Below, in pieces: positions 1,355 to 62,500 of a stretch of 64,000 nucleotides of DNA. Below the pieces are notes generated by a model that saw nothing but the letters and a program-made list of their open reading frames with translations, was not told the origin of the DNA and searched no databases. Position 1 is the stretch's first letter. Every line of letters begins with the position of its first letter. The DNA is from Monocercomonoides exilis PA203 (Eukaryota; Protista; Preaxostyla): the NCBI GenBank assembly GCA_001643675.2, contig LSRY02000004.1:2108001-2172000 (forward strand), read 5' to 3'. Made by a program: the position numbers and the translations under genes.

Positions 1355-1880
1355 TATTTTTATAAAGAGTTGATCTTTTTTATAATTATTAGTTTATAAA
1401 ATTGTTAAGTTTATTTTTATATTATATTTCTGTTATATGGGCTACTTGTTATATTTTTGAGCAATTATTGTTAATAAGATTTGTTTGTATTTTCCTAAAA
1501 TTGTGAGATCTGCATGCAAATTTCCTTTTTTTTCGATAAGTCCTAAAATGTAAATCATATTAAAAAGCATATGCTTTTGAATAATTGTTTTGCGTTATTT
1601 TTTTCCCATGACAATAATTAAGCAAATACCAAAAATTGCAAAAATGATTTTATATTGGATTCCTTATTCTCACAATTTAAAGTTAAAATCAAAGTGACAC
1701 AATTCCTTGGATAGTCTTTTGTTTGGATAATAACGAAAATTTGAACCTTTTTGAGTTCTTCAAAGAAGTTCAATTAAGTTTTTCGAATAAATGTCAATTC
1801 AACAATTATGGAGAAATTACTGTCTTTTTTCAAAATTTCAAAAAAAGGGAATTATCGTAGATTTTTGGAAAAAGTAAAAA

Positions 1881-27957: not shown

Positions 27958-29890
27958 ATGTTAAAATCAAATGCAATTGTCACGAATGTTATGAATGGTA
28001 AATAGATTGCTCAAATTATTAATTTGCTATTCAAAAATATTGATGTTTTCAATTTTATTTCAAAACAATGTACGACAACCTTTGGCAACATGAAGGTAAT
28101 GATTATGTTGGTGGCGCTTTAGTTCTTGGACATTCGATCAAAAGACACCTTAAAGTGCCTTGCGACCTTATATGCTTAGTAACTTCTGATGTTACAAACG
28201 ATGCTAGACTAACTTTAACCAAGATATTTGGTATTTGCGTGTTTTCGTGTTAATTCAGAAATAATTATTTTATTCTTGATAGATTTTGTAATTGAAATTG
28301 AAAAGATTGAATGGCCATGCAACATTGATAAATGGAAGAGATTTAAAGACAGCTACAAATGGATTTATTCTTGCTTTACGAAATTAAACGCATTTCAACT
28401 ATCTTGCTATCAAAGAATTCTTCTTCTTGACGCTGATATGATGGCAGTTGGTTCAGTTGATGAACTTTTCACAAATACATTTGTTTGCTGTTAATTGCGT
28501 TCATATTTATGAACTTCGTGATTTTTCCATTTCTAAAAAAAAAATCATAATCTAATTATTTTCTTTTTAATAGAATCTTCCTTTAGGAACTGTTACCGGT
28601 GATGAATGCAGCAATTTAGAATTAGGCGCTGTAGTAAATAGAACGCGTGTTGTCGATTCACTTCGAATGTGCTATGGAATTAGCGGTTGTAGCTTGCTTT
28701 TCGAGCCTAATGTTAAGGATTTTGAAGGGATGCTAATTGAACTTACGCAAAACAAACATTACGGGAATGAAAGATTCAATGCAGGGCCCGACGAACAACT
28801 TGTCGCACAGTATTTTCTTAAGAAAAACAAATGCTGGCATTATTTGCCATCCAAATATTCTATTCCTGGCTGGAAGTCGAAGCTTGTGGAGGGACTTGCA
28901 AAGTTGATACCAAATGAAAAAACAATAGAAGAGCCAAAAGGAAGTAATCATAAGGGAGCAAAAAGAAGGGAGAGAGGTTCTGAAGATAACGAAGAATTTA
29001 TTGGTTTTGGGAAAAGAGGAAAATGGCAAAGTGCAAAAAGAAAAGAAAGAGAAGAAAAAACGACTCAATTGATTCAACCTGCTGAGTTAACAGACGAAGA
29101 CAAAGCAAAGATTGAAAGAAGAAGGCAAAGATTCGGAGGCTTAACGACAAATATCAACAATCAGCCAAGTTCTGATTTGAGCCAGTTGCAAGCGTCGCAA
29201 TCAACAGAAACACCAGAAGCGAAAGCCGAAGAGCAGACATCCAGCGAAGAGGCAAAAGACGCATTGGAAAGTGACTCAACGGCTCTTATCCACTTTGTGA
29301 CGGAGAAGCCTTGGCGCTCGCAACACGGAGACTGGGCAGACTTCAAGCTGTGGAATGCAGAAGTGCGCTTGCTGTGCAGAAATGACAGTGAAAAACCAGA
29401 AAAAAGAGAAGATTGCACCAAAAAGAAAGAAAAGTTGGATAATTCTGAAACAGAAAGAAAGGAGGGGCCTAATGAACTGCAGCAAAATGAACAGACAGAA
29501 GGAACTTCTGAAGATGAAAAGAAAATTTCAGAAGATTTGGCAGCTTCCGCAGAAAATGAAGCAAGCCCATCAACATCCATTGAATCATCTGCTTCTTTAT
29601 CCACACAAACCATTCTTTCTGTCTCTGCAACATTGTTTTCAAATTGGTTCCCAAAACGCATATTTGAATCTGATCCATTTAAAGAAGAAGATTCTGCACT
29701 TTCATCGAGTTCTTCAGTAAGCTCTTCTTCTGTTATGTCGTCTTCGCTGCCTCCTCATCCATTCAGAGAGTCTGATGCTGTTATTTCACAGCCTGAACAG
29801 CATCGCTGCCTTCATCTGAGAGACTTTCTCTCCAAACGTGGAATTGCATACATGGAACCGTCTTCAATTGTCCCCGCACTGCATTCATAA
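27958..29890 (+). CDS. Glycosyltransferase family 8 (glycogenin-like), multi-exon
   Basis: AIVT...DYVGGALVLGHSI, FTKLNAFQL...ILLLDADM (DxD), GPDEQL and IHFVTEKPW. Short GT-AG introns separate the ORF pieces. Confidence 0.88.
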
Positions 29891-39767: not shown

Positions 39768-42700
39768 TTATAGTGAAGCTTTTTCGATTCTGGCAAGACA
39801 CGACTTCGCATGCTGAGCAGCAGGCGATCCGTCCCACACCTCCATAATGTTCTCGAGCACTTCATTCACTTCTAACTTTCCTAATTCTCTTGCATGAGCT
39901 GGCGTAGCTGCAATGTTCATAAGGCCAAGCGTTGCAAGCTTTGCAGTTGCTTCGTGCTCTTCTCCGAACACCTTCAAAACCTTAAGAATGGTACGGGGAC
40001 CGTCCAATGACATGAACGAAACAACATTATCCTCTGAGGAATCAATTTAGTCACAAACAGTGTCAGTTAAAAAATTAAAAATAATAAATTAAACAGTAAT
40101 ATATGTGAAAAAAAAAAGATATTTACAAACCGCATTTTGTGATCAAATTCACAGTTGCAGCAGTTGCTGATTCGATAAATACTTCCTCTTCCTCTTTTTC
40201 TTCTTCTTCCTCCTCCTCTTCCTCCTCTTCATCATCACTCTTTTTATCATTCTTTCGAGATGAAAGTTTTGTACCTTCTTTTTCAGCTCTCTTTATTTCA
40301 GTGTTTAGCACAGATACCATCAACTTTACTGCTTCTAATCCATTAAGAGTCTTCTTTGCAGTTGGATTAATTGCCAGTTTTCGAAGTGTTTCGCACGCGC
40401 TTGCAATGAAATCACAATCTTCATCTTTCACGCTCTTTTCGGCATTCTTTTCATTCATAGCATCTGCAGACGATTGCACATTTGCAGAAGAAGACTTAGA
40501 ACTAGATGAGCTGTTTGCAGAATAAAAGTCCTCGTACATTTTCCCATTCATATGCAGTTCAAGCTTTTTCAAGCCAATCTGTATGATTTTCAGAAGTTCT
40601 GCAAGCAAATCTGATTTTTCAGTGGCAATTCGATCTCTAATGTCGTTTTCAGTGAGAAGGTTTCCGAGAAGCTGAAGAGCAGCACGAAGCGCAGTTGATG
40701 TGGATCGAGACGGAGCCCAGAACATTTCTTTGCTTTCGGCTGCTTTGCTGCTTGTGATAATCTCATGCTTCGAATTGATTTCTGCGAAAAACACAATCAG
40801 AAGCTCAACAACTCCATCATCAATTAGCTGATCCAAATTTCCATCGTCAAATGCAATGTTCAAAAGAGTCATGAAGCACTTCTGTGAAAGCATCTGAACA
40901 AATGTTGGAGTAATCTCGAATTGCGCAGGATTTGTCGTAGCATCAGCATCATTTCTGTCAGCAGAAGAGGACGAAGCAGATGATGAAGAAGCTGAACGAG
41001 TATTACTTTGAAGTGTGAGAGATTCTTTGGTTGGATGAATTAAAAGATTTAACAAAGAAATGATAAGTGCAATTCCACCGGCTTCGACAATTTCAGCACT
41101 GTTAGATTGATCAACAGCTAAGTTCACCAGTGCATCAACGATACTCATAACAACTCGGTCTATTTTGCCCTTTTTCTTTTCCAGGACTCCAAGCAATGCA
41201 TCAACAACTTTCGCTTCTTCGATCTGCTTCTGATACTCATCTGTTTGTGTCAAGTTGATAATTACTTTGATTGCAGAAATGGAAACTTCCTCTTCAATCA
41301 TCAGGTGAACATTCATCAAGCGAATAATCTCTGAAAGAACTGCTTTTTCAGCAAGTACCTTTTTGTGATTGTCTGACAATGAAAGAGCTACAAATATATC
41401 TGCAACATTTGCAACAACAGACGTTTCATTCAAAGTGAAAGTCTGCGCCGCTTTCAGAAGCAATTTGACCGAATCCTCCGTTGCGATTGACTTCAGAACT
41501 TCGTCTGTTGATGAAATGTGCTGAAGGAAACATGTTGCATCACAAACGATGGCTGAATTATCCAAATTCGAAGAAATGGCATCAAGGGACAATTTGGCCA
41601 CATCTTCAGTTGCCAATGCATCCATTGCAATCTGAGAAACTGTCATGTTTCCAATCGCATGGAAGATTCTTTCAACAAGCGTCACTTCTTCTTCCAGCTG
41701 GAGATTCTTTTCCACTTTTGTCAGATTTTGTTCTGATGATTTGATTTCTTTGATGGCTTTGCATGCATTTCTTCCAAGCGTTACAAGAGACTTATGAGCA
41801 TCCTCCTTAACTATTTGATCAGATCCATTGGGCATCCAAGCAATGTTTTGGAAGATTGAAACAAGAATGCGAGTGAGAGAGTTCTGCTCCTTTGAAAGAT
41901 AGAAATGCATTGCAGTTTCAACCATCTTGCAGAATTTCGGAATTAAAAGGAATTCATCTGCAAGTGTGCAATCGCTCGTAAGGTTCAAAATAACAGTGGC
42001 AACAGTTCGATAGACTCTCAGAAGCAGTGTCTCATGCTGCTGGAGTAGGTGAACCATTGCTTGGACGAATGGATGAGGCGTTTGCTTTTGCGAAGAAGAT
42101 GACGAGGCTGATGATGCATTTGATTTACACATCGCACCAAACCTTTCTCTGTTTGTGCTTCCAAGTGACAGCTGAACAAGAACAGCAAGAACTTTTGATA
42201 AAATGGACACATCTTCATTATATGCATATTTCACAACGCAATCAGTCAATATTTCAATTCCATTTGATTCGCGAATAATCACCTTATTTGGCTCTTTTTC
42301 TCGGACGCTCCAAATGATGTGGCTGCCATTCTTCAGTAAAACTTGATCTTGTTTGTTGAACGATTTTATGAATTTCAGAACAATTGGAATGCCTCCTTCC
42401 TTAACAATTCTCTTCAGATTATTCACACGATATGTCAGAATTGCTAAGGCATGAATCAGCTCGCTTTGAAGTTCTGACGGTGCAGAGTCAGCGCTTTGCT
42501 CAGAATCAGAGTTTTGGGCGATGCTCTCTTCCATTCGCTTGATAATTAACCTAATAAGTTCTTCATCATCCAATGCAGCTGTATTCAAACGATTCACCAA
42601 AAGAGCGAACTGCTCTCCAAAGTTTTCAAGAGCTTCTAATAAATCGTCTTCATTTGTTCCTTTCAGTGCTTCTTTCAGTTGCATAATTGCTTCAACTGAT

Positions 42701-45700
42701 TCCTCGCTTCCGAAATCGCCTTCATCTTCTCCTTCGTCATTCACATTCAGGGTTTCGCACAACGTTCCGCAATTGTGTTCATTCATAAATACGGCATGTT
42801 TCTTCCTAATTGTCTGTCCATCTTCACCTGTCCAGAAGCGAACGTCCATCGTGGCAGCAGCACATCTCACACATTCAATGCCTTTTTCCGATGCAACACC
42901 AATTGCAGTGTCAACCAACATCTCATTCCCCATTCTGTTCAGCACAAAGTGCTGGAATGCATCCAATAGCTCGTTGCTGGCCTTGCATTGATTGATCAGA
43001 TAATGAGATGATGAATCAGACTCAGACGAAGAAGAGATAGACAATGGGCTACTCGCCACACGAAGCAAATCAACCTTGTCTGTGTTGACAGAAAAGAACA
43101 TTGGAGAGCCAGCTCGTTCAGAAAATTCAACAATTACAGCCTCGCTAATGAGGATTGGAGAAGGAGGATTAAGCGAGTTAAAGTTTGAAGCAAGTGAGGC
43201 TATCATCGAGTGAGTCTTTGCAGCGCACAGATACTTTTGAATCTGCTGAACGGTTTTGAATGGTCCTTGAACAATCCAATTGCTTGGTGCGCTGTTAACA
43301 GGATCTTTCAAAACCAACTTCCGCAGCTCAAGATTCTCACTCTCGCCAAGTTGATTGGATAGAAGTGTTGCACTGTGCTCGATGTGCTCGAAGAGCTTCT
43401 TTGAAACATTGTAACTGTGGAATGTGATCTTCTCTTCTCGCTCATCAAATGCGAAGTTGGAAACCACCGACAAATCAAATGAAAAGCCGAGCTTTGCCAT
43501 TTCTTCCTGCTGTTTCTCTTTCATCTGCAGAACTTCCATTTCGAGCATATTTTGATACTCCTCATCTTCGGAGCTTTCTCTTGAAACACTTTTAATTTCT
43601 CCACTTGTTGCCATTTCTGCTGCATCCATTCCATCGTCAAATGAACTTGATGTTTCGCGCTTTCGCACAACCCTTCTATTCCTTTTGTGCTCAGGCGCTG
43701 CTTCTCCTTCATCTTCCTTTGATTCCTGCGCCTCTTCGACAACTTCCTCAGCTTCTGGTTCTTCCATTTCTTCCTCTTCGAACTCCTCATATTCTTCAGG
43801 CTCTCCAATCTCCACAAATGCAATGTCTCCATCCTGCAATGATTCCTCATCGTCTATCTCAAACGGATATTCCCCTTCAAACTCTCGTTCATCCTCGGAA
43901 AGCGTCTCGTCGTTTCTTGCCGGATCGTTTGGAACACGTCTCAGCCACTTCTTCCCATTTTTGAATACGATTGCCCTGTAATCCACGCCTTCTTCTCCAG
44001 GTGGAGAATCTGAGTAGATGAACTCTTCTTCTTCAGGAAGAGGAGGTGCTTCTGGAATGAACATTCCATAGTCAGGAAGCACATCTGTTGTAAGTATCCG
44101 CTTATCATCCACTCCTTCAACTTCGTCATAATCCATCGAAAACTCAAGTTGGTATTCTTTTCCTTCTTCAAACATATCCTCTCCGTCAATGTAATCTCCA
44201 AGCTCACCTTCGAACTCTCTTTCTTCTTCGTCCAAAGACATATCATGGAGAAGAGGATCATCTTCTTTCCTTCTCAGCATTTTTCTGCCTTTGCTAATAA
44301 AAATAATTCTCAATTCAGTTTGCAAATTGTCTTCGTTATATTCTTTCCCTTCTTTTATTGACGAGCCCGAAGATAATGACGGACTTTCTTTCGATCTTTG
44401 CATCTGTTCCTTTCTTGCTTGTGTCAACGACTCAATAGGTTTGACGCTTCCGTCCTTTGTTTTCTCTCCGATAGCAATTAGTGGAGTGTTTGTAGAACTG
44501 GATGACTTTTGTTTGATTATCGTTTTCCCTCCCATTCCTTTCGCCACATCGTATGTGGGCACAATCTGCACTTGATATTCTTTGCCTTCAACAAATGTAG
44601 ACTCACCAGGAATGGCTGTGATGAATTCTCCTTCAAACAGACCTTCATTTCCTGGTAGGCTGCGAAGTGGATCATCAGCCTTGCGCTCGAGCATCTTTCT
44701 ACCATTGCGAATAAGAATTGTGCGTGTTTCAGGAAGAACTGTATTAATACCAAACGTAACAGAAGAAGTATCTTGAGTGCTCCTTTGAGATGGAGATGCT
44801 TCAATATCTTTGCGAGATGTTGTTGCCTGTGTGATAAGAATCTTCTTGTCAATTCCTTCTCGTTTCTCGTAATTCTTTTTCATTGTCACAGGATACACTT
44901 TCCCTTCTTCAAATGTATTTTCTCCATCAACATAGTCAATAAGTTCTCCTTCTATATGATCATCTAAAACTGCAACTGCAACTGCACCTCCAGCTTTGCC
45001 TGCAAATGCATCTTCGTTTGAGTTAATAAGCATTTTCTTTCCATTTTTGATTGCAATATGTCTTTCTTCAACTTCGTCAATGTTCAAAACAATATCAGAA
45101 GCGGAAGAAGAGGTGGTAGCGTTTGCTTCTGATTTTGCAATTGCATCATCAGTCTTTGGAGGATGCTCTCTTTTCTCCAATCGAATAACATCTCCGTGCA
45201 AAATGGTCTTCCCTCCAACTCCAACAGAAGATTGATACAGCGGATCAACCATCACCTGATAAGACATTCCTTCACGAAACTTGTTCTCTCCATCGATAAC
45301 TTCGACATATTCTCCTTCAAACTCTCTTTCCTCTTCAGTAAGAGATTGATCGTGCTTTTTCGCATCATTTTCCTGTCTGCGCAGCATCTTCTTTCCGTCC
45401 AGCACAACAATTTCTCTCATTTCTGGCTCCACACATATTGTGGGTGTTCGGTTGCTGCTCTGAAGAATAGCCTCTCTCCGCTTGATTGCATTCTCTGCGA
45501 TTGCTGCTTTGCTCCTGGCACGATATCGCTGGATGTATAGCTGGTTGTCCTTCATCCTCTTTCGTTTTGCTGCCAGCATACGACGCCTCTTCGCTTTCTG
45601 CTTGTCTTCCAGAGATTCAGTGTCTTCAATCTGCTCCATCAGAAGCAAATCAACCTCGTCCATTGAATACTCACGCACAACAGTCTTCTTTTCAACTCCA

Positions 45701-48700
45701 CAGCCAACCTGATAGAACGGGTCAAACAAAACATTGTACTCTTTCCCTTCCTCAAATTTTTCTTCTCCCGGAAGATATTCTTCGACTTCTCCTTCAAATT
45801 CTCTTTCATCTGCGCTCAATGAAGCATCCAAACGTTTTGGATCATCAGACTTTCTCTTCAGGAACTTCTTTGAATTCCTCACAACAATAGTTCTCTCTTC
45901 TTTTTCTTCTTCTGGCAGTGGCTCGCTTGGAATGTCGTACACAAGCACAGTTGAGCCAGCAATACCTTTGGCGGGAAGAAATGCGGGATCAACCACAATT
46001 TCGTACTGCTTTCCAGATTCAAAGTTCTCTTCCCCTTCAATTGCGTTCACATATTCTCCCTCAAACACTTTGGTAGAATCCTCCGCTGTTTGTATCTTTG
46101 CTGCCTCTTCTGGAGTAATATCCTTCTTTGCGAGCATCTTCTTCCCATCTACCACTTTCACCACACGCGTCTCAGGAGCCACTCTGATTGACGGAACAAA
46201 CCTTTGCTTATCTCGCTGCTTCCATCCGATTGTCCTCGGTGCAACAGAAGTGGAACGAGGCCTTTGAGAAAGAGAACGAGAGAACGAAGATGTCAATGCA
46301 GGAGACATCTGCGAAGAGCGTTTTGAAAGCGAAGGAGATGTGCCCAACGCTTCGAAAGGAAGAGGAGATTGAGAACGGCGAAATAGTCCTCCACTCCGTG
46401 ATGTTTGCTTTCCTTGTCCCTGGTTGGAACGCGCCTGACTATCGCTTCCGCTGCTAACAGAGCTAAGAGGCAAGCTATAAGTACCATCATCATGACTTGC
46501 TTCTTGTGTTACGATGCGTGCTCCTTCGACACCCTGTGCTTGTCTGCATTTGACACTAAGCGACACTTGATATTCTTTGCCTTCCTCAAACGAGCATTCA
46601 CCAGGAACATAATCAACAAGCTCTCCTTCATACAGCTTCTGTTCTTCACTCAATTTGGGAGACTCAGCCTCTGCATCGCCTTCTTTTCTCTTTAGCATTT
46701 TTTTGCCATTGCAAATGACTATTGTACGTTCTTCAGTGGATTCGAGTATATCTTTCAACAAAGGAGATTGATCGATCAAAGAAGGCGATGAAAAAGGAGT
46801 AGATGTTGATGATTGAGGTCTCACAGATTCTGAAGCAGCAAGCACCGCAGCGGAAACCGACGAGGCGCCGAAAATAACTGGCTTGTTGTTCAGTCCCTTG
46901 ACAATCTCGTATGTCGGATCCACCATCACTTCATAAGATCTTCCTTCTTTCAGCAAATGTTCTCCGCAGAGCACCTCAATCACTGCTCCTTCAAACTCTC
47001 TTTCGTCTTCGCTGAGCGTTTTGTCATTTCGCAATTGGTCATTTTCGCGGCGGCGCAGCATCTTTTGCCCATTTTTGATGACAATTGTGCGAGGCTCTGC
47101 AACGACGCAGTTGGAGACAGAAGGAGAAGGCTGAACAGAAACTGCACTTGCAGCTGCTTTTGAGGCAGCATTAATCACAGGAGTGGAAGCAGCTTTAGAC
47201 GCATCCAGAATTTGGGACACATCAACGAAAGCAACTGCACTCGATGAAGAAGATGCTTCAGGTTGATTTGAAGCCGAAGATCCACTGGCAGAGGCATTTT
47301 CTGCGTCTGATTGATCTTTGCTCACTATTTCCTGTGCAACCTGCGGGCAGCGTCGGGTTAGTGCAACAACTTCTTCTTGTTTTCCATTTGCATCTGTTTG
47401 CACTCGCTTAACTGGGAAGTAGTCATTTTTCATCAGTACTTTGTATTCAGCTCCTTCAGCAAAGCACCCTTCGCCTTCGATGTAGTCAACAATCTCACCT
47501 TCAAATCTCGCTGAGTCAGAAACAGCAGCTTGTTTCTGTTGATCAGATTTCACAAGCATCTTCTTTCCGTTTTGGATCACAATCGTCCTCAACTCCTCAG
47601 CAAATGGAACAACAGCAGCAGGCTCAGATTTTCCGCTGAGAGCTGATGCATGAGGTTGGATGGTCTCATCAATCTGAACTTCTTTTGTTTGAATGACTTT
47701 CTGTCCTCCAACACCTGTCTTTTGTGCATATTCAACTGGAATATACACTTCATATTCATTTCCTTCAGTCATCTTATCTTCATTTAAGATTGGCTCAATA
47801 TAAACACCTTCAAACTTTTGCTCTTTTTCTGTCAGATTCAACGATGAATCATTCAAAACAGGGTCATTTTCTCTTCTTTTGAGGTACTTTTTCCCGTCCT
47901 GCACAACAATTGTTCTTTTCTCCTTCAAAAGTGTTGTGTCTCTTTGTTGAGCATTCACTATTGCTTGTTCCTGAATCTGTTGTGCTTTCAACAAATTCTT
48001 CTGTTTCAGTGCCTCCTCTCTCTTCAAAGCTTCAGGCGTGGCAGTGAAGATAACTTTGCCACCAACTCCCACTTTCTTTTCCATGTCTGAAGGAGAGATA
48101 ACAACAGTATAAGTCTTTCCCTCTTCCATACTTTCCTCTCCTTCAATATGATCCACATATTCTCCTTCAACATACTTTGAAATGTCGCTCTTTGATGCTT
48201 TGATCTCATCAACATTGGCTGCTTTTGAAAGCAGCATCTTTTTTCCATTCATAACAATCAGAGTTCTTTCTTCAGGTGGATAGCGGATTTGAGATGTCTT
48301 CAATCCAAGTTCTTTTCGTTCATCTACTTCGCCTTCATCCGCATTCTCATTGCTGACTGCTGAAGCATCGTCGTCCATGTACTCATCATTCACTGGACTT
48401 GTTTCCCAGTCATCTTTGCCCAACGATGACAGAAACTGCGATGCCAGAAAATCATCAGCTGCTCCGTTCCCTATCACCTCCATCAAATGATCATCTGCCT
48501 TTCGATCAATCGTAATAACCGTTTTGTTCCCCACACTTTTGCGCAGCTGCATATCTTGGTCTCTGATATTCACTGGATATGTTTTCCCTTTCTCGAACAT
48601 TTCTTCTCCTTCGATGTAGCCTGTGACTTCGCCCACATACTGCTTTTCGTGCTCAGAAGCAGACTGATCCAAGAGCATCGGGTCATCGTCCTTTCGTTTC

Positions 48701-51700
48701 AGCAACTTCGCTCCACTTTCGCTCAGCTCCACATTGCGATAATCGCTGCCTTCCTTCATATCACTTGGCAATGGAGTGTTGAGCACTTGCGGATAAGCAG
48801 ATGGCTTGACACCTTTGCTTTCAGACGCAGATGCAGAAGCACTCGAAGAAGAGCCTCCTTCGTATCTTCTTCTCAATGCCTGCACTGTTTCATCCTTCAC
48901 CAGCTTGCACACTCCCACAACTCCTTTTGCTGCTCCCCACAAATTCTTCCAGAAGCCTGGATCTTTCGGTTTCTTCTGAATGATGTTGACATTATTAGCA
49001 CCCTTGTGGATCTCGTATTGTCTTTCATCCATTTTGATCTTGTATTCCTTCCCTTCTTTGAATTTCTCTTCACCATCGATGTATTCAACAAATTTCCCTT
49101 CGTATTGCTTTTCTTCAGCTGAAAGAGAGTTATCGTGTCGTTTTGGGTCGTTTTCTCTTCTCTTCAGCATCTTCTCTCCATTCACAATGACAATTTTCCT
49201 GTCTTCTTCTTTTGGAGTCTTCGCTCCTTTCTTCTCAAGCTCTTTCTGCACTGATCTTGCTTGAGACTTGCAGGATGATAGAGACGGAGAGTATTTCCCG
49301 TGTGGTGTAACAGCAGGTGTTGACGAGACATCCGCTGGGTGGTCAAATGGCGTGTGTGGCTGAGACTGCGGAGGATGGATAATCACTGTTGCTCCTCCAA
49401 TGCCAGACATGGTCGAGTAATCAGGCTTGATCATCACTGGATATTCTCTGCCTTCCTTAAACTTCTCTTCTCCTTCAATGTATTCAATGTATTCTCCTTC
49501 GAACTTATTCTCTTTCTTTTCTTCAGCATTATTTTCCTGTGAAATACCGCCTTCTTTGCTCTTGAGCATCTTTTTGCCGTCAACAACAACAATCATCCGC
49601 TTTTCTGGAACAGCAGCAAACTCCATCTGTGCTGAAGAAGGAGTCGAAGGCACAGAAGACAGAGAAGGTGACATGAACACATCTGATGACTGTTGCTGTT
49701 GTTGAGGCGCAGAGGTTAGAATTGTCAGAGAAGGTGGAAGATTCGGAGATTTCTGTACATCTATCGATGAATCTGAAGTCTTTGAGGCAGATTTCGCAGG
49801 AACAAGCGAAAAAAGAGAAACAGAAGATTTCGTTTCTTGTGTTCCTTTGGCCTCTTTTCCAGCTTGATTTTGCGCTTTCATTGAAGGAGATGTTGAAGGT
49901 GATGCCATTTTCTTGTTGACTGCATCTGTCAGCTTCATCTCTCCCTTTGCTGCTTCTTCTTCCATCCCAACAACACACAGCGGCCGACGAAACACAACAA
50001 CAGTCTTTCCATCGAGTCCTGTCTTTTTGTAAGACGATTTGGGGGCAGTCACCTGATAGCTCTTCCCTTCCTCGAACTTGTCTTCTCCGAATATGAAGTC
50101 AGTGATCTTTCCTTCGTATTCTCTTTCTTCTGCTGACAGCTTCGTGTCTCTTCGCTTCGCGTCGTTCAGCCTTCTTTTCAGCATCTTCTTTCCTCCCACC
50201 ACAGAAATCGTGCGTGTTTCTGTCTGAGTGCTTGGAGTAGGTGGAAACGGAACAGGAAATGGTGTTCTCGGCGTTGTAGGAGAGAGAGGCGTCATCGGAG
50301 TGAGCGGAACCAAAGGAGAGTACGAATACAGCATCTTCTGCCTCGCCAGCTGCATTTCCTTCTGTCTCTGCTTCAAAATCTGCGTCTGTCGCGCTTTTTG
50401 GAGCTCGGGGCTCGAGATCAACAGCTTATGCTGCTCGGATTCCTGCATAAAGCGCATCAAACGCTCTTTTTCCAGCGGATTCGGGCGAAGAACAGTCTTT
50501 CCGCCAGCTGCAGGCTCAGAAGACAAATGTGCAGGGAGCAAAACAGGATACTCTTTGCCTTCTTCAAACGTGTCCTCTTTCTCAATAAAGTCCAAATATT
50601 CTCCCTCAAATTCTCTCTCATTGGGGGACAGTGTTTGGTCATTGCGCTTTGGATCATCTTCTTTGCGCTTCAGCATCTTTGCTCCGTTTTTGATCACAAC
50701 AATCCGTTCTTCTGCTGTTCCTTCCTTCAGCACAGGCGGTGACGGCAGAGGAACATCTTTCATCTGAGGAGTATGCTGATACGAGCGGGCTGATTCACTC
50801 CATCTGCTCTTCCGCTCTTCTTCTTCCTCTTCCCACTGCGCCAATTCTGCTTCGTATTGAGCATAACGCTTTTCTTCATTCTCGACCTCCTTTTTGTACT
50901 CTTCCATTTTGGTTTCGTACTCCGACGTCTTTTTCTTGAACATTTCAGCTTTCTCCTTTTCCCTCTCCAGCAGCTTCTCGCGCTCTTCTTTCATCGCCTT
51001 TGCCTTTTGGATTTCTTCTGCTGAAGGCAACTTGATAGATGGAGAAGACGGGACAGAAGATGGTGTGACTGAAGGAGATTCACCTCCGGCACTCTTCTTT
51101 TGAGTGGGAAGAAAGCGGAACATCTTCTTTCCTCCGACATGTTCGCATTCTTCATATCCACGTGGAATGGACACAATGTAATCTTTGCCTTCTTCCATTG
51201 TCTCTTCTCCAACGATGTACCCTCCATATTCTCCTTCAAATATTCCCTTTTCTCCAAACGGCTTCTTCTTCGGGTCGCCGTCTTTCCTTTTGATCATTTT
51301 CCTTCCTTTGCTGATTGTCACCACACGTTCCTCAGCTGTTGTATCACCTGGTGCACATTCACTCCAATGTGCTGGATGATCTGGCACACCTCCTTGTCTT
51401 ATCAGCTTTGCCTGTGTTGAGTGTTCTTTTTCATCTGCTTCTTCATTCTTCTCCAGAAGTATCGTCCCTCCTTTCGATCCAAGCACTTTCATTGGTTTGT
51501 ATTGTGCATTTATCGTCACATCGATTTCTTGTCCTTCTGCCAGCTTCTCCTCTCCTGGGATATACTCACCCCATTCACCTTCATATTTTCCCATTGGACC
51601 AGGAAATCTCCGCTTGGGATCGTCCTCTTTCCTCATCAGCATCTTCTTTCCGTTGTTGATGGCAATACGACGTGAAACCAATCCATCTCCAGTGGAAGGA

Positions 51701-53130
51701 GACAAAGAAGGAGAAGCGGAGGAGCCTGATGAAAGCACTGGCGAGGCTGAAGAGGCAGAAAGAGAAGGTGAAGATGAAGACGATGCAGTTGCCTTGTCTG
51801 CTTCTTCGACTGCTTTCAGCACAGCTTCAATCTCTGGTGGAAGTGGCTGTGCAACAATCGTTGGGGGAGGCGATGGTGGTGTGGGGGGTCGCGGGGGTAT
51901 TATTTCTTTTGGCTCAAATATTGGTTCCTCATCTGCATATATATCTCCGTTCAAACCAGCTTCTCCTCCGGCTGCCGATGCAGAAGCAGATGAATCAGCA
52001 GAGCCTTGCTGAGGCCCCCTTCGCAATCTTGGTCTTCTCCTTGCAAACTTCAATATGTTATCAGAAGGTTCGATTTCCTCCTCTTCATTTTGCTTTTCAG
52101 ACATTTCGATCCTTCCTTTGTCCATTCTTCCTCCTCGCCTTGCTCTGGCTGCACCAACACGAATCGTTCGTTTCACTCTGCGACTGTCATCATCTTCAAC
52201 TTCTTCATATTGAATTGGCTCTGTTTTCAAAGGAGTAGGTGCTCCTCTTCCTCTTCCAACACCTCGTCCTGCTGCTCCTCCTTGTTCGACACCAACAACT
52301 TGTCCAGATCCTCTTCCAGTACCTGCTCCAACAATTGCAACGATTGAGCGAAACTTACCGCTCATCACGCGCACCCATCTCCCGTCCTTTTTCACCCAAC
52401 GTGCTCCAGTTCTTGTTCCAGTGATTGGCTTTAGGACTTGTCCAGTTGCTCCGTAAAGCTTTGCTCTCTCTTTGACGGATAATCCGGATATTGAAATAAT
52501 ATTGGCGCGAGGCTTAGGAGCACCAGAAACAGAGCCAGGAACAGATGTTACTCGGCTTACTGATAACTTTATTGGTTGTGGTTGTGCTTTTTCCTTTGGC
52601 AAAAATGCCAATGGATGCTGTTTATCGTATTGCATTCCATTTGCTATAGCTTCTATAAATATATCGTGCAAAATTAAAGTTAAATATTGTCTTCTGTGAA
52701 TTACAAAACTATTAACAAACCTTCATATCCTTTATCAGAAAGCAGGCCACTTGATTTTAACTCAGCTAAAAGTCCAGAAAATAGTTCAAATTTTAAATAC
52801 TAATAATAGCACATACATTCAGATGCTTTATAAAACTCATTTGAAATGAAGGTTGCCATTTTTAGTGAGACTCCACAACTGGCAACACGTGAAAGAAACA
52901 AAAGACGCTTCTTTGGATAAACATATCTATCTCTAAAATCTGTCATTGAAGTTGCGCATCTAGCGATACATTCTGCATAAAAATCAGGTTTATCGAGTGC
53001 ATCCCAGTCAATTCCAACAGAATGTACCCATTCTGATAAAATATGTGTTTTAAAGAGAACAAATCATTATCAATGAAATATCAAAAATAACGAAAGCCAT
53101 ACGAGAATCGGGCTTTGCGTTCGAGGTCAT
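39768..53130 (-). CDS. Giant (~4,370 aa) protein: 19 copies of an unrecognised ~75-aa domain, an alpha-kinase-like pseudokinase and ARM repeats
   Basis: 4182-aa ORF plus three small 5' exons (ATG 53130) and a final exon (39768-~40034), joined by phase-compatible GT-AG introns. The repeats and motifs are read directly from the translation. Confidence 0.85.
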
Positions 53131-53597: not shown

Positions 53598-56500
53598 CTA
53601 CTTTGAGATATTCAAAGTCTCCAAAATTTCGAATTTTCTCTCGTAAGTCATCAAATCAAGAAGAAACATGGCGGTTGAGTCTGCAACGCTGCTTGCAAAT
53701 GGAATAAGATGAGAAATTTCCGTTTGTGAAGCATTTTGTTCCTGTTTGTCTAGCAAACTCAGAAGCAGCTGAGAAGAAGCATACAAGCCATTCAAAACAT
53801 ATCGGCGCGATGACATCTTCTTTTGGGGCAGTCCAGTCCAAATGGCATTCTTTTCACTCTGTTCTTTCTTTATCTTCCTGTTTCTTTCTTTCTCTTCTTT
53901 CATCGACTGTTTGATTGCCATCTTGAGCTGATACTCCTCATCATCAAATCCTTTGGACGCATCCACACTTCCATCAAAGTATGTCTCTTCGCTTTCATCT
54001 GAGCCATTTTCTGAATCACTTTCTTTGCTGTTGCTTTGCTCGAATTCTTCTTTTGTAGCCAAATATTCAGATGAGTCTCTCAAAAATGCCTCTTTTATCT
54101 TCTGCTTCACTGCATCAGATGCAAATTGATACAAATGCACAAGCAGAAGCTCTCGTACTCCTATTCCTGCTGAAAGTGCAGCCTGTTCTTTTTCATCCAA
54201 CACTTTGTACAGATGTTTTTCTTTGCTTGCTTTTCCTTCGCTAAGATTGTTTGTAGAACTTGCAGAATTTTCACCAGAAAGCATCTGCAAATCATCTTTT
54301 TGTTTTTCATCGACAGAAGACAGAAATTCTCTCACTCGCTCAGCTGTGTCCACTTCATTCCTCCACTTATCGAATGTCTTGTTCAACAAAACTGACGCAT
54401 AAAAGCCGAATGCGGCAATTATTCTCAAATCAAATGACAGCTCCGTTGTGTTGACTGGTAAAGGAGAAGTGAACGGAACAAGCGAAGAAGGCGACTGCAC
54501 AACAGCTGCATTTGTTGACTGTTTTCTCTCTGGGAAGTCTTCTCGCAGCAGAGGGAAGAACAAACGATTGGCGTAGGCAGAATGAGGGGACGTGGTGTGA
54601 TGAACACATCTCTTTGTTTCAGAGCATGTGCAAACACTTCCCACACGCTGCACAAACTGCGGGGCTGAACAGATCGGAGTCTGAGGACTGATCAAAAAGC
54701 AGGTTGAAACCAACGGTGAACGGGAAGAACGATCCAAAGAGGGAAGCAATGAGGATGGGAGATATGAAGGCTTGCACAGAGATCGAATGGTGTTTAGATA
54801 ATTGTTGTCAACACACAAAAGCGCATCCTTTGAATGAGCAGAATCCAATGAAGATGATTCTGATGATGCTGATGATGATGTGGGGAAAAGATTATTCTGT
54901 GCATTTTGAATAAGACGATCCAAATGATGAGTTGGAACCGAAATCGTTGTATGAATAAGATCAGGTGGTGTGGAAAGTTCCAACGAGAAGAATTTGACTC
55001 CAATCAACATCCTTGCAAATTGCTCTTCAGCAGACGATGAAGAAACAGCAGATGAAGAGCTCTTATTGTCTTTAACTTTGTTCTGTGGCTTCTGCTCTTT
55101 TGAAACTAGCTTCTCCGTCCCAACAACATCTGCCATTCCCATCTCATCCAAAAGCTGTTGCTTTTGCTCCATTCGCATTTCTGTGCTTCCAGATCTGTTT
55201 GCTCCTGTCTCGTTTTCTTGCACTTCTGCCAGGCTGCCAAAGCCACGTTCTGGATGATGAACTGAATCAGATGGTGAAGCATTTGCACTTTCAGTTTCGT
55301 TTTCACCATTTTTACTTCCAACTTCGATGTCAGTTGGTGGCTCAAAGAGTGAATCAGTAATCACAGGGCGAGCGCGGAAATCTGGTGGCTCTTTAAGTTC
55401 TTGTTCCTCTTCAGTACTGTTAATTCCTTTATTCGAATAAGATGAAGCCGAAGATGGAGATGATGATTGAGATTGTGTAGAATAATTTGAATAAGAAGAA
55501 GGTTCCGATGGAGGCGGTATTGGACGAGGTCTGTTTGCCTGGGGATTCATCATTGACTGCGCAAGCGATGACTGATATTCTTGATTCATTGAATTTCTTG
55601 TTGCACTTGCGACAATTGATGCTGCAACCATCGCTGCCTGCATTCTCAGGCCAGAAAGCTCATCATCTTCTTCCTTCAAATCTCCAGCAGCTTCTGTTCC
55701 TGCAGGTGGCTTGTATGTCTCAGAAGCACTCAAAGATGAGGAAGAGGTGCGAGAAGAGGATGGGCCTATGTGAGGGATTCCTTTTGCATTCGAACGTGAA
55801 TTCGCAGTCTGGTTTGTCTTTCCATCAAACAATGGATTCTTTGTGAAGGCGCCACTGGAAGTGCTGCTGTGATCAACAGAGCTCGAAGAAGATGAGCTAC
55901 AACTTGACTTATTTTTATTCTGTTCATATTCAGTACCTTCTTTTGAATGCTGAGTAATAAATCCATCCTTCGTGATGTCGACATTGTACTTCGCCATCAG
56001 GTATTGACCCAGTGCTTCAATGATGTCGCTTGCGAGTGGGTCGTGCTGATCAACAAGCAGCGACAGCACAGACAAGCAGCGGAGCCTCACCTGAAGCGGA
56101 TAGATGCTGCTGAGCATTCGCAAGCACAGCGTTGAAATGAGCTGAAGTGTCTCATACTCCATCTTGTTGACTAATTCAATGCCTGTTGTCACATCTATTG
56201 AATTGATTACTGCATTGTTGCCTTCACTCACATTGAACAGCACAATGCTATCTGCACAGAGCGAAGGCACTTCCTCTTCCTCATCTTCTGGTGACTGAAG
56301 GTTCTTCTTCTTCCTTTCTTCTTCCGATTCAAATCTTTTTACCTCGTTCTTCATCATCACCCACTCCTTCACCACCAGCTCAATTATGTCCATTGCATAG
56401 ACAGCGCTGTGAAGAACAGATGTTTCGTCCCACATCGCATAAGCGAGTGTGTACACGCTGCTCTCTCCAGTCAAATTCTTCAGCATATGCGCAAATCCGG

Positions 56501-59500
56501 AGTGGTTTTCAGTCAGAAGAACAAGAGCGACTTTTCTTCTCAGCGAAGGACTGTCAAACAACCGAGATGGACGAAGAATGCGATCAACAGCTGCGTTGCA
56601 CGATATTGTTTCGTGAAGAAGCGAAGAATGATGAAACGGGAGAGAAGAAAATGAAGGAGAGAAAGAAGAAGAAAACGTTGGAGTAATTGAAAATGTTGGA
56701 TTGATCTCAGAAGGAGGAATTTGAACGAATGAGTTGTGTGATGTAGCCATCAGGTGGAGAAGACGAGGTGTGTGTTGTGTCAGCATTGCCATCATGAAAT
56801 ATGCAGTGGAATATGAATGAGTGAAAGAACGAACAGAACGGAATTTGTGGAATAGCTTGACGATAAAGAATTCAAAGTATGTTGAGGCTTTTCCATAAAA
56901 CTTCTGACGTTCATCAAGCTTAACAGATGAAGAAAATGAAGATGCCAAAGCAATCTCTTCTTTATTTTCTTCTTTGCTTTCATCAGAAGCAATTTCAGAT
57001 GAGTTCTTAGTTGATGTTGACTGGCTGAGTTCCCTTTCAATCTCTTCTCGTTCAGCAGCACCGACATTCTCGTCAATGAGAAAATGAGCAAAAGCGTTGA
57101 AAATCGGAGCGGAGCGCGGGAAAGAGAAAGGATTCGCGTAGAACCTTCCAAAGCAGAATGTCGTGTAATTCTGAATAACTATTTTTTCAAATGCATTCAT
57201 CTTATGACTGCCCTTATTATTTGTGCTTTGTGCAGATGCACTTGAAGTAGCTGAATCACTCGAAGCCTTTGAATGCTTCTGCTCTTCAGCAAGAAGCCTT
57301 TCCTTGTTGTGCACCCAGTACACACACAAATTACAGAAGAAGCTCATACACGTCTGGAACATCTCATCAGAATACAGCAAGAACTGGTTGACATCAGCTG
57401 CAAAGTATGGCAGGATAGGCAGATGCTCCAACATAAAGCGGCTAAATGGCAGCGGAGACGAGCGAAGGATCCATTCGCAGCATTTGCTTTCTCTTCCGAT
57501 GACTGTGTCCATCAGTTGCATCACACCCAAAAAGTTCAGATTGCACAGCTTGTCTGTGTTGTACACTTTCCACAGCAGCTCCAAAAGAAGAGGCAGCCGT
57601 GTGGCAAGTGCTTGAAGTCCCATTCGCTTAGTTGTGCCGTGTGACGAAGGAGGAGATGACAGAACAAGAGACAAGTCATCCAGCTTCTGTGACGTTGGGA
57701 AGACTGCAACAAATCTTGAGGGCTGCGAGGAAGAAACAGAAGCATGCGAGGTGGAGGCTGAACTGTCAGCAGACTTTTCAGTCGTTTCTTGTCGAGGCTT
57801 TGCATCATTATTTGTGAATTCTGTCAGATAATCATTCCACATCTGCTCTTTCTTGAGTATCACATCTTCTGCTGGATCTTCTTCTGGAACATCGCGTGCA
57901 AACCACATAAGAAGTGCGAGGTATGATGTCATAATCCAGTGATGACGAATGACAGTCTCAACATTGTCAGAGTGGTACAAAAAGCGTGTTTCAAGCTTCG
58001 ATTTATCATCTGCATTCAGAACATTTCGTGAGTCCAAATGTGAAAGCAGGCAAGAATACACATTCAGCGCCAAATGCTCAAAGATTGGATATTTCTCCAG
58101 GTCAGAATCAACATGAGGGTTCACATCAAGATGCAGTGGAAGCGGCTCTGTGACCTTTGTCGTCTCTAAAATTTCCATTTCATTCATCTCTCTCTTCAGC
58201 ACATCAGCCTCACTCATCCCTTCCTTCGCCTCATTCTCCCAATGCTGCTGGCGCCAAAGTGTAGCCAGAGTCTTCTCAGCACCTGGATTCACATCAGGCG
58301 AGTTGTGGAGCAATGTTGAAAGAGGAGATGTGTATTGAGCAGTTGGCTGAAGATCCATTGGTGTTTGATAGAGAGAGAGAAGCACTCCCTTTTCAATGTC
58401 TTCCTTCAAATCGACTTCAGTTTGGAAGGTTGGAGAGAGACGCGCATATTCAGGCAATGCGTCTTTCTTCCACTCCACCTCTTTAAATTCGAGATGTGCA
58501 ATGTCTGACGATGGCGGTGGAAGAGAACCACAAGTTGTGCTATCGTTGATGGGAACAAGAGAGAACGGCTCAAACGATTCTGTGCCGGACTTTGTGGCAG
58601 AATTGCCTTTTATTGAAGGCAAAACATAAGGCACCAACACAGATGGTCTTGACAGAATGCGAGGAAGAGTGAAGAAAGATGCATGGAATGAATTGGACAA
58701 ATACTCAAAGCCTTCAACACGGCACAAATGTGACGGAGCGAATGACCAAGAAGAAGATGAGATAGAGGAATCGAACGATGAAACGGGGATTGCAATGCCT
58801 GAGGAAGAGAGCAAGGAATCTGTGAAGGTAGATGGTGCTGTTGTAGTGTTCAGCATGCTATTTGATGCTGTTATTGGAGCATTTGGATCATCGAGCATTG
58901 AATAAGGCAGACACGAAGTCGATGATGAAGACGCCTCGATTGGCAACTTCATTTTGGCTGAGGCTGCTTTGTCTCCTTCTTCTGTACTGTCGTCAATCAG
59001 ATAAGGTGCAAATGAGAAAGGAGTTGTGTGCAAAAATGATTTTTTCATTGGGAACGGAAGCTTCGAAGACCAGTTCTTCAGCAATTCTGAGACCGTTGGC
59101 AACACTTCGGTTGTCCTCACTCCGTATTTGCCTTTCAAATCTTTTGGCAATGAAGAAACAGAACTCAAGTGCTCTTGCATTGCTGCTCCCTTCTCTTTTC
59201 TCATTCTTCTGTGTTTCTCTTTCACTTCCTTCTTCTTCTTGTTCACAAAGAACATAACATCATCTTCTCTCTCTGCGCCATTATCTTCCAGCATAGCCAC
59301 ACGAAGTGCTCTCGAAATGGCTTCCCTAAGTGGATAAGTCATTTTGCTGTATGTGCCTTTCACAAGTTCTGATAGAATATTCATTCCCAATGAAACAGTT
59401 TGTGAATCATTTGAATTCTTGCCAACTTTTGTGCTTTGCTCCTCTTTAGCTTTTGTCTCTGCATTTTCCTCAGTTTTCGATTCATTCGCTTTTTCTGTTT

Positions 59501-62500
59501 CTTCTTTTGTTTTGTCTCCTTCTATTTGCATGACAGTATGTTCTGCTTGCTGTTCATTGTTGTCTGATTGCTTGATTCTGTTGCATCCTCCTGCGATGAA
59601 ATGTGCAAATGTGCTGTTTTGTCTGCACAAAGCGGCAAATGCAAATAGTGGATGAGTCTTGAGTCCATTCCAGACATCTTTCATTATAACCGTCAAGAAC
59701 GCGTCGAGGACAAATAGAATTGGATAGAAGTGCGCCACACGTGTCTGCAGAGAAATCAGGCGCCTTGTGAAGAGAGACGAAAGAGAAGCAGCTGGTTCTT
59801 CGGGCAAGTCGATTGAAGGGTCAATGTCTTCGTCTTTCTTGCTCATTGCGATGCCGATCGTAGATGCAATTGAGGAAGAAGACGCTGAAGATTCTGAAGC
59901 TGATGATGAAGAATTAAGCGTTTCTGTGATTGATTCGAGACGCAACAAAAGCAATTTTTGCTCAATTGAATCATCGTCTTCTTCAACAGCCGCTGTGCTT
60001 TTAATCTCTCCTTCTTTATTGATGCTGCATTCACTCAGATTATCCACTTCAAGCTGCTTCATCAGTTTGCTCAGTTTATGCTCACTGGAAGATTCAGAAT
60101 CATCTTCACCAATTTTTCCATAGCTTTTCCACCATTTCCACAATTTCTCTTCGAATACTCCGGCTGGATATATATCTTCCTCTTCTTTTTGGCTTATCTC
60201 AACTCCTTCTTTTTCTCTGTCCCATTCTTCCTCTTCTCTCTCAAACTCATTATCATTCGCATAATAAGGCCGTGTGCAAGGCGTCATCAGCAGGTCGAAG
60301 AACACAGCCACAAACAATTTTGGCTTTTCAGCTTTGTTCATCAGATAGACAAAGAAATTGCCCCAGTTGAACATCTCGTTCGGATAGCGTCTGCAGGAGC
60401 ATGCAATAGCAGAAGACAGCAGACGAGCAGGAGAAGCAACATCCAGAATGATTGCAGGCAGCTTATCCAATGCGAATAGCGAATACGGGTGCAGAAGCGG
60501 AAGGCGAGGCAGTTTTGGATCTTCCTTAGGCATGTTTGTTGGGGAGTACAATCTTTCGAAAGAAGGAGGAGGCAGCTGATACGGCTGGTTGATTGTGGGA
60601 ATGCCCAGAGCACCTGCGTGATGCTCAGCCAGCGACACCAGCCGCGTCTGCCAGTATTCAGGCATCCCAACAGAGGCAGAGCAGCAGACAGCAGCAATCG
60701 CCTCCATTACCACAAACATCACGTGCGATAGAGTTGTCTCTGAGAATGAAAGAGAGAACTTTGAGAAGGAAGAAGAAGAGGACGAAGATGCAGCAGAAGA
60801 AAGCTTAGATTCCAGTTTGTGTTTGTTCCATGGATAAAACGATTCTGTGCCTAACACAAAGTCAGACATCCGCTGAGAGAAGTGGTGGGACACGAGAATG
60901 CCTGCTGCATACGGCGAGATCAGCGCAAAGTCCTTGAAAAGAAGGAAGAGAGGAACAAACTTGTCGGCGCTGCCCTGTTGGCGCGGCAGGAAATCGAGAA
61001 GAATGAGAATAAAGTGGGAGATAAATGAAAGAGTGCTTGGAGTGCTTGGAGAAGGAACTGAAAGGAAAGAGTGGGACTTGTTGAACTTATCGAATATGAC
61101 ACTAGTTGAAGGAGATATACCCTCATCAAATGAAATAGAATGAAAGCTTTTTTCCTTCTTTGCAACATAAACTGTTGGAACGGATTCATATTCTTCGTCA
61201 AACTTTCGATCTTCAATTTCTTTAGCTTTCGCTTTTGCATTCACAAAATATTCCTTCAGCTGAGTGAGAGAGATGCCCATTTCTTTGCACAGTGCCTCTC
61301 TCTTGCTTGCTTCGGTGTATGGATAAGGGGAATTCGGATTCTCTTGTGCGAATTCGAGATCCTCTGGTTTCAGCTGGAAGTGAATATGGAGCCTTGCCTC
61401 AACACATCTTTGCTCTTTCTCTTCCTCTGTCATTGATTCAGCAAGTGACTGCAATTCTTTCTTCTTCTCTGCCTTTTTCAATGCATCGTTGTATTCTGCA
61501 ATGCGCCGTTTGGCTTCTTCCTCCTTCACAGCCTTCGGGAAGATTGTAGAAAGAGCACAAAGAAGAAGACGACAGAAACTTGTCCGCATTGCGAGATCGC
61601 TGCACTCAAAGAAGAACTGAGTCAGCAGCGATGGCGGATCCTCTTCAGACGCTGGCATCAAAATGGCAGCAGCAGACGACGAAGCTGAAGCTCCGCAGAG
61701 CTTCTTCTTCTCTTCCTCTTTCAGCTCAGCATTTGCTGTTTTCCTCCTCTTCTCTTCGCTCAGCTCATCAACAAGCACTTTGAGGAAGCTATTTGCGACT
61801 GACGGGTGGCGCGTAAGGACGCCTTCGATCTCTTTCATCCACTCCACAAAACGCGGCTTGGCCTTTGCGTGCGAATGGACACGCAGCAAAAACAGAAGCC
61901 ATGTGACAAAGAAGTCATCTGAACACAAGGAATCTTTAGAAGATGAAAGTTTTGAGTCAACTGTCTCTTCACTTACCTTTTGAGTGCTTTGAGTTTGACT
62001 CTCAGATGATGAAGCGGTTGAGGAGTCTGCAGAAGTTGAAAGAGCAGGAAGTTTGCTCAAGTTAAATTCTGCCCAATTCAACGAACTCCACTTCTTCTCC
62101 AATTGGCTTTCTTCCTTTGAAAGTTCCTCTTCGATGCGTTTCAATTCTTCCTCTTCCTTTGCTATCAATTCTTTTCGAACGGCATTAAGTTGTTTCTTTT
62201 CATTGCTTTCTTTGCTGAGCTTTGTTGCATTTCCCTCATTTCCTTCTCCTTTTCCTTCTCCTCCTTTCTCCTCCATCTGCCCCATCTCAACCAGCTCATT
62301 CAGCTGGCTCTGCATGCGCAGATTTTCCCACTCGCTTTTTCTCCTTCGCCAGTCTTCTCTTCGCCTCAGCAGTTCGCTGCAGACCTTCACATCTTCGCTG
62401 TTCATCGCCACAAATGCGTCGTGGAAGGCGTTTGCATACGAAAGCGAAAGGAAGTGAGCCTCGCGGAAAAGATTGTTGTTGTCAGTCTCAATGGACTGCA

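Follow-up and report, generated by a model that had tools for sequence, protein, structure and literature searches.

What does a gut protist that lives without a mitochondrion, Monocercomonoides exilis, do with a giant protein built around nineteen copies of an unfamiliar domain? Such a protein is encoded in the 64,000-nt stretch of DNA analyzed here (the window). Our tentative reading, to which we give a little less than an even chance, is that it works inside the cell as a tether or scaffold peculiar to oxymonads, with the cytoskeleton as its most likely setting.

Gene structure and the repeat array

As the initial annotation had it, all 19 copies lie in one minus-strand frame (40123–52722), where they span 43798–51678. 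On closer view the gene has five exons and 4,358 codons, and this frame is its exon 4, which refines the earlier picture (Table 1). The orthologue in Blattamonas nauphoetae, BLNAU_9451 (KAK2955592.1), has the same domain order, and all four introns are common to both genes, while synteny is limited to scattered short matches. Positions 40240–45600 of exon 4 are covered without gaps by one RNA contig, and intron 4 is skipped in two RNA runs and not in the DNA run. The product of exon 5 is 37% identical to the C-terminus of the orthologue. Another AG, 9 nt downstream (52644), might serve exon 4 as an alternative acceptor.

Table 1. Features of the gene, as positions in the window
Feature	Position	Strand	Remarks
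Exon 1	53103..53130	-	28 nt, predicted from sequence; ATG at 53130; length and phase as in Blattamonas exon 1
Exon 2	52817..53032	-	216 nt; conserved N-terminal domain, no assigned family; 62% identity to orthologue
Exon 3	52721..52765	-	45 nt; length and phase match orthologue
Exon 4	40131..52652	-	12,522 nt; low-complexity N-region, array, acidic spacer, alpha-kinase-like domain, most ARM repeats
Short conserved hairpin-like motif, W-V-K-x-x-G-x-W-V	52363..52407	-	In N-terminal low-complexity region; kept in orthologue
Repeat 1	51451..51678	-	
Repeat 2	51106..51333	-	
Repeat 3	50476..50712	-	
Repeat 4	49984..50220	-	
Repeat 5	49369..49605	-	
Repeat 6	48970..49206	-	
Repeat 7	48502..48741	-	
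Repeat 8	48037..48273	-	
Repeat 9	47680..47922	-	
Repeat 10	47371..47595	-	
Repeat 11	46861..47097	-	
Repeat 12	46498..46734	-	
Repeat 13	45931..46173	-	
Repeat 14	45664..45900	-	
Repeat 15	45187..45423	-	Copy used for folding
Repeat 16	44821..45069	-	
Repeat 17	44503..44730	-	Loop type common in Blattamonas
Repeat 18	44080..44316	-	
Repeat 19	43798..43983	-	62 aa; lacks C-terminal hairpin
Acidic low-complexity spacer	43498..43797	-	Between array and kinase domain; from sequence
Alpha-kinase-fold domain, catalytically degenerate	42739..43440	-	Pfam Alpha_kinase; alignments to eEF2K and MHCK-A
ARM-repeat solenoid	40135..42690, continues in exon 5	-	Pfam ARM_ARMC5 E 3e-13, below family cut-off
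Intron 4	40034..40130	-	97 nt, GT-AG; same codon and phase in orthologue
Exon 5	39768..40033	-	266 nt; last ARM repeats and stop; spliced in RNA

The units are 75–83 residues long (copy 19 excepted) and follow the consensus originally described, with K, G, E and G invariant in all 19. Leave-one-out profiles score each copy at 54–108 bits, against 4.6 bits for the best of 200 shuffled proteins, and these scores, together with the RNA coverage, rule out an artefact or chance repeat. A six-frame scan of the window with the copy profile gave no twentieth copy. The array was taken from the start to be old and selected, and its divergence bears this out (mean DNA identity between copies 49%, pS saturated at 0.76, pN 0.44). 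Recent tandem expansion is ruled out by this saturation and by the lack of block duplication (best 4-unit block 33%, median 27%). Linkers of 10–131 residues, rich in S, P, E and K, separate the copies; the disordered linkers total about 1,150 residues, or 44% of the array, and fully stretched would reach up to about 0.5 micrometre.

An undescribed barrel

What kind of domain is repeated? AlphaFold predicts a small folded beta domain (pLDDT 94.8 and 96.0), with confident units separated by disordered linkers, much as the beads on a string first envisaged. On these models the repeat is a small OB-like barrel of an undescribed family, one that stands apart in structure even from other OB-like barrels, and a new, confidently predicted domain family is thereby defined. 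Neither profile nor structure searches matched a described repeat family: no copy matches a Pfam profile, those of S1 and CSD included, and there is no Ig or Fn3 character by profile or fold. Within the libraries searched, the domain is restricted to two genera, Monocercomonoides and Blattamonas, in keeping with the lineage restriction proposed at the outset; the metagenome contigs, plasmids and phages searched yielded nothing.

The loose likeness to DUF4377 (PF14302) that had been suggested fails as a family relationship. Against a nine-sequence DUF4377 alignment only a 22-column motif aligns (probability 4.9%), one of 100 column-shuffled controls scored higher, none of 65 copies matches the Pfam profile at E up to 10, and the repeats have neither the cysteine pair nor the C-terminal P-P-A-D motif of that family. 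Profile probabilities are 0.4% for the NlpE C-terminal OB domain and 0.2% for S1 (an alignment of five E. coli repeats), and membership of DUF4377, NlpE_C or S1 is rejected on these comparisons. The NlpE and DUF4377 domains, moreover, are single domains of exported lipoproteins, unlike the array. Viral RNA-polymerase fragments came up in an Atlas feature search (0.93, on some 150 of 256 features) but find no support from structures in PDB or BFVD and were set aside. So was the mite protein P0006 (E 5e-6), in which just a 26-residue hairpin within a simple repeat matches, each copy below 8 bits; this is taken as chance.

Could the barrels hold nucleic acid? Nearly all top rows of the structure search with the predicted repeat are OB folds, many of them nucleic-acid binding (SSB, HIN, Teb1, NusA S1, IF1, cold-shock), and basic residues are conserved in the first hairpin (R in 58, K or R in 60 and K in 62 of 65 copies). 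The protein might thus be a multivalent RNA or ssDNA scaffold like Rrp5, ribosomal S1 or Unr/CSDE1, its copies holding a long nucleic acid while an eEF2K-like pseudokinase and ARM repeats provide a link to translation or ribosome assembly. Among solved structures, eEF2K is the best relative of the kinase domain, and the N-region has five RG pairs and a net charge of +15. The three model proteins likewise have many OB-like barrels per chain, and in Rrp5 many S1 domains are followed by helical repeats at the end. The window protein, on the other hand, has no S1 or cold-shock signal, and differs in its acidic units, long linkers, kinase-fold domain and occurrence in two genera only; the net charge of the repeats is also weakly against RNA or ssDNA binding. 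We regard such a scaffold as unlikely, if a serious contender.

Protein-binding OB or barrel domains (NlpE-C, potempin, RB1CC1 Claw, TPP1) are also among the best rows, SP/TP sites cluster in several linkers, and ARM solenoids are general protein binders. These features would suit a soluble signaling or trafficking hub with no fixed cytoskeletal place. There, peptides or small proteins would dock on the individual copies, phosphorylation would fall on the Ser/Pro-rich linkers, and integration of the signal would be left to the pseudokinase–ARM end. However, the linkers of the orthologue are short and have not retained the SP/TP-rich stretches, and twenty near-equivalent copies fit a repeated target better than varied partners; a hub of this kind is rather improbable.

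The two ends of the protein

The alpha-kinase-like domain, the ARM repeats and the N-terminal domain, which are the parts most telling on function, were absent from the initial finding. Our first guess for the domain after the array, a GNAT-like fold, was replaced after the match to Pfam Alpha_kinase (PF02816), at 26.1 bits here and 37.2 bits in the orthologue against a cut-off of 21.3. As in the PF02816 members eEF2K and Dictyostelium MHCK-A, the zinc site is kept (ligands H, H, C, C in both species; 42940–42957 and 42757–42780 here), and a repeat solenoid follows the kinase: ARM here, WD40 in MHCK and helical repeats in eEF2K. The active site, in contrast to that of MHCK-A, is degenerate. 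The catalytic-Asp position is Thr in the window protein (42907–42909); in alignments to eEF2K and MHCK-A, the position of Asp756 is Thr/Lys and that of Gln758 Ile/Val in the two species, and neither has an Asp in the next strand as an equivalent of Asp766. An acidic residue precedes the catalytic-Asp site by one position in both species, the hinge Glu is replaced in both, and the glycine-rich C-lobe motif is altered. The N-lobe, with the invariant Lys645 and the P-loop Arg592, lies beyond the reach of the alignments; the Lys position there is presumably Gln/His. Judged by the aligned residues, catalysis has apparently been lost. No alpha-kinase of Monocercomonoides is named in the literature searched.

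The ARM region of the orthologue matches ARM_ARMC5 at E 1e-21, with Arm above its cut-off, but ARM_ARMC5 reaches just 50 and 78 bits (window, orthologue) against the 79.9 required for ARMC5 membership. No PDB match at E 0.01 and no database relative places the solenoid in a named ARM family. The N-terminal domain is the best-kept part of the protein relative to the orthologue and has no Pfam, PDB or Atlas match; a SAM fold, suspected by eye, was dropped, having no Pfam or PDB support and just one Atlas row (0.76). Word searches for the N-terminal domain and for kinase–ARM combinations, within length windows, found nothing.

Evolution of the array

A second family member, Blattamonas KAK2950271.1, has 25 copies of the domain, compared with 19 in the window protein and 21 in BLNAU_9451. 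Kinase and ARM give way in it to a charged helical rod, 590 residues of which 71% are E/K/R/A, and to three unassigned C-terminal repeats; its label 'FtsY' is backed by no Pfam match. In the repeat tree, 20 of the 21 copies from the orthologue group together in a clade of their own (support 97/89), and copy positions in the two orthologues are uncorrelated (rho 0.22, P 0.36). BLNAU_9451 departs from the window protein in its short linkers, in a repeat variant without the loop and in a block duplication of recent date. That copy number is similar despite the rebuilt arrays fits interchangeable units.

Might the copies bind nothing at all and simply hold two working ends apart, as mechanical spacers or as springs that can unfold, the way most titin Ig domains do? 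Their best-kept residues could all be structural (turn glycines, paired charges), the loop between strands 2 and 3 is dispensable, being missing in 10 of the 21 orthologue copies, and the ends are kept as well as the array or better (62%, 36% and 32% identity versus 33%). Yet the disordered linker would already serve as a spacer, and total array length differs 1.5-fold between the orthologues; we consider pure spacers very doubtful.

A tether of the cytoskeleton?

Under the tether reading, each copy would bind weakly and could stand in for any other, and avidity would let the copies hold on to a partner that is itself repetitive (a fibre protein or a filament lattice). Slack or elasticity would come from the linkers, and the two conserved ends would anchor the chain, the pseudokinase–ARM end recruiting partners and phosphorylating nothing. 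The architecture kept in the orthologue, the common introns, the confidently predicted units and the similar copy numbers count in its favor, as does the loss of catalytic residues with retention of the zinc ligands. The 4,358-residue sequence, moreover, shows no signal peptide and no clear membrane helix, the highest hydropathy peak (1.97) lying inside an ARM helix. E/K/R/A helical rods are usual in protist cytoskeletal proteins, and the joining of the array to such a rod in KAK2950271.1 points the same way. The oxymonad cytoskeleton is large and lineage-specific, and myosin is lacking (PMC6759080); what the non-microtubular fibres of protists consist of is for the most part not known (10.1101/2024.03.29.587336).

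Several observations count against the tether. Profile searches found no known actin- or microtubule-binding domain, many structural neighbours are nucleic-acid-binding OB domains, and the array, at a net charge of −78, fits poorly with direct binding to tubulin tails. Copy spacing is irregular (91–207 residues, versus 70–100 in the orthologue), so that the array is not a lattice-matched ruler.

The working mode would resemble that of titin-class giants and ALPK3, reached with unrelated parts in a myosin-free cell. Like ALPK3 (a vertebrate alpha-pseudokinase with Ig domains) and titin/obscurin/twitchin, the window protein is a large intracellular chain of small beta domains between disordered stretches, and after the array comes a C-terminal domain of kinase fold, inactive in fact or by appearance; ALPK3 also uses the alpha-kinase fold, and the ALPK3 and titin pseudokinase domains are M-band scaffolds (PMC9698156). 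The inactivity of ALPK3 is disputed, however, since it has also been treated as a signaling kinase (PMC11358020), which counts against the tether reading too. The window protein differs from this class in its OB-like rather than Ig/Fn3 beads, ARM repeats after the kinase, irregular spacing without positional orthology and a host without myosin, and shares no sequence link beyond the kinase fold. No precedent was found for the combination of barrel array, alpha-pseudokinase and ARM repeats.

A bolder version, to which we give a low probability, would make this the first member of a family of oxymonad-specific titin-like giants, matching the M-band scaffolds by convergence but without myosin: new OB-derived beads, with a barrel possibly from bacterial NlpE/DUF4377-type domains, would cross-link or tether axostyle or root-fibre elements, and the alpha-pseudokinase–ARM head would be a recruiting hub. 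For the oxymonad axostyle, preaxostyle and fibres, whose protein components are not known, this gene and the relative with 25 copies offer concrete candidates, both of them expressed and each from a culturable species. Going by its residues, the kinase domain would also be a second, independent case of an alpha-kinase seemingly without catalysis in a giant beaded protein, here in a myosin-free lineage.

A giant gene with an old repeat array

The initial annotation had described 19 copies of a domain of no known family in one giant protein. Motif and profile searches both recover these 19 in a single open frame, with no twentieth elsewhere in the window, and the domain is real and undescribed. 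Scored with a profile built from the remaining 18, each copy reaches 54–108 bits, whereas shuffled proteins reach at most 4.6. DNA identity between copies averages 49%. The array is old, with selection acting on its protein sequence, as had also been claimed, since synonymous differences are saturated (pS 0.76), the non-synonymous difference is 0.44, and the codons for conserved residues are mixed among copies.

Comparison with Blattamonas nauphoetae BLNAU_9451 (KAK2955592.1), with homology searches run exon by exon, extends the gene beyond the long frame by three small exons at its upstream end and one at its downstream end, giving 4,358 codons in all. Because all four introns lie at matching codons in phase 1, and exons 1–3 measure 28, 216 and 45 nt in both species, the two genes are orthologues. 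Introns 1–3 are putative, placed by homology only; intron 4 is spliced out in two RNA runs and retained in the DNA run. A single gapless RNA contig spans copies 15–19 and, beyond them, the kinase domain together with most ARM repeats. Two short contigs of depth 2, in a sequencing run listed under another organism, match part of the gene exactly and are probably carry-over rather than a relative.

Coordinates of features (window unless stated)
Feature	Position	Strand	Remarks
Long open frame	52722–40123	minus	holds all array copies
Array	51678–43798	minus	19 copies
Exon-2 domain	52817–53032	minus	72 residues
Contig match	40301–40731
Neighbouring frame	53598–64000	minus	continues past window end
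Oxysterol-binding protein	2136–4079	plus
1,588-residue protein	7045–11811	plus	CCHC zinc knuckles
Long Ser-rich frames	16563–18068, 18884–23203, 24458–27179, 28667–29887		no Pfam match at E 0.001
P0002 (orthologue)	L001 10001–20144		21 copies
P0002 duplicated block	residues 698–1196, 1447–1937		six units
P0001 (KAK2950271.1)	L002 10001–23303		25 copies

Relatives and turnover of the array

Where else does the domain occur? Among 1.84 billion proteins, the profile search found Blattamonas proteins and one mite repeat, the latter a chance match, and nothing else. Every true relative belongs to the oxymonad B. nauphoetae: the orthologue, and three fragments 84–94% identical to KAK2950271.1, a second family member with a charged rod of 590 residues and three C-terminal repeats of no known family. 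These repeats form a module of ~230 residues without a Pfam match, and no domain backs the database name FtsY. The fragments (P0003, P0004, P0005), annotated as short genes, look like recent partial duplicates of pieces of P0001. Streblomastix and Paratrimastix gave no match in the searched libraries; this is weak evidence of absence, since the libraries also omit the window protein (and, in the profile search, KAK2950271.1). The known range is two genera.

In a tree of all 65 copies, 20 of the 21 orthologue copies fall in one clade (support 97/89) without window copies; the remainder is poorly resolved. When copies of one array are paired with their best matches in the other, the pairs do not keep positional order (rho 0.22, P 0.36), and copies are spaced 91–207 residues apart in the window protein versus 70–100 in the orthologue. 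In the latter, units 5–10 and 14–19 (60–64% identity, short/long order S-L-S-L-S-S) are a recent block duplication, an incipient super-repeat; no such duplication was found in the window protein. Copy number stays near 20 while copy identity and spacing do not, so the units are interchangeable and the array is not a ruler.

The conserved ends

The array is followed by an acidic spacer and an alpha-kinase domain that exceeds the Pfam cut-off in both species. Aligned to eEF2K and MHCK-A, this domain appears dead: Thr or Lys stands in place of the catalytic-loop Asp, Ile or Val in place of the Gln, and Val in place of the hinge Glu; the next strand lacks its Asp. MHCK-A catalysis requires Asp756 and Asp766 (PMC4876393). 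An acidic residue one position ahead of the catalytic site in both species is a caveat, and the alignments leave the N-lobe lysine uncovered. The ligands of the zinc site, which is structural (PMC2827801), are retained. Between the two genera this domain shows 36% identity, hence it is kept as a fold. Some 900 residues of ARM repeats, matching no named family, follow. The exon-2 domain is by far the most conserved part of the gene (62% identity between genera) and matches no known family; by eye only, it is SAM-like. No signal peptide was seen in the protein sequence, and the sole hydropathy peak falls in an ARM helix.

What might such a protein do?

About 20 folded beads, interchangeable with one another, are strung along the giant protein, a long intracellular chain conserved at both ends. 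Many equal, weak binders would suit a repeated target; that the copies are pure spacers is improbable. The long, disordered linkers of low complexity (10–131 residues each, 1,147 of the 2,627 array residues) would give reach, by residue counts ~0.5 micrometre when stretched versus ~0.2 in the orthologue. A kinase without activity, joined to an ARM solenoid, would suit a recruiting hub. A soluble signalling hub seems rather unlikely. An RNA scaffold, a somewhat better but still doubtful candidate, would accord with the OB-like fold of the copies, their basic first hairpin and a kinase domain akin to that of eEF2K; however, the units carry a net negative charge (mean −3.4; whole array −78) and lack any S1 or cold-shock signal. 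We tentatively favour a cytoskeletal tether, at a little under even chances, because oxymonads, which have no myosin, build elaborate microtubule and fibre systems specific to their lineage (PMC6759080), because the second family member has a charged rod, and because chains of beta domains that end in a scaffolding pseudokinase are already known from ALPK3 and titin (PMC9698156). If it is such a tether, the protein would work like these giant beaded scaffolds, but it belongs to no such family, and within the searched libraries and literature its overall architecture is new.

The neighbouring frame exceeds 3,400 codons. It encodes the last part of a ubiquitin C-terminal hydrolase domain (E 2e-11) and, in its middle, shows a weak Homeobox_KN match (E 9e-4).
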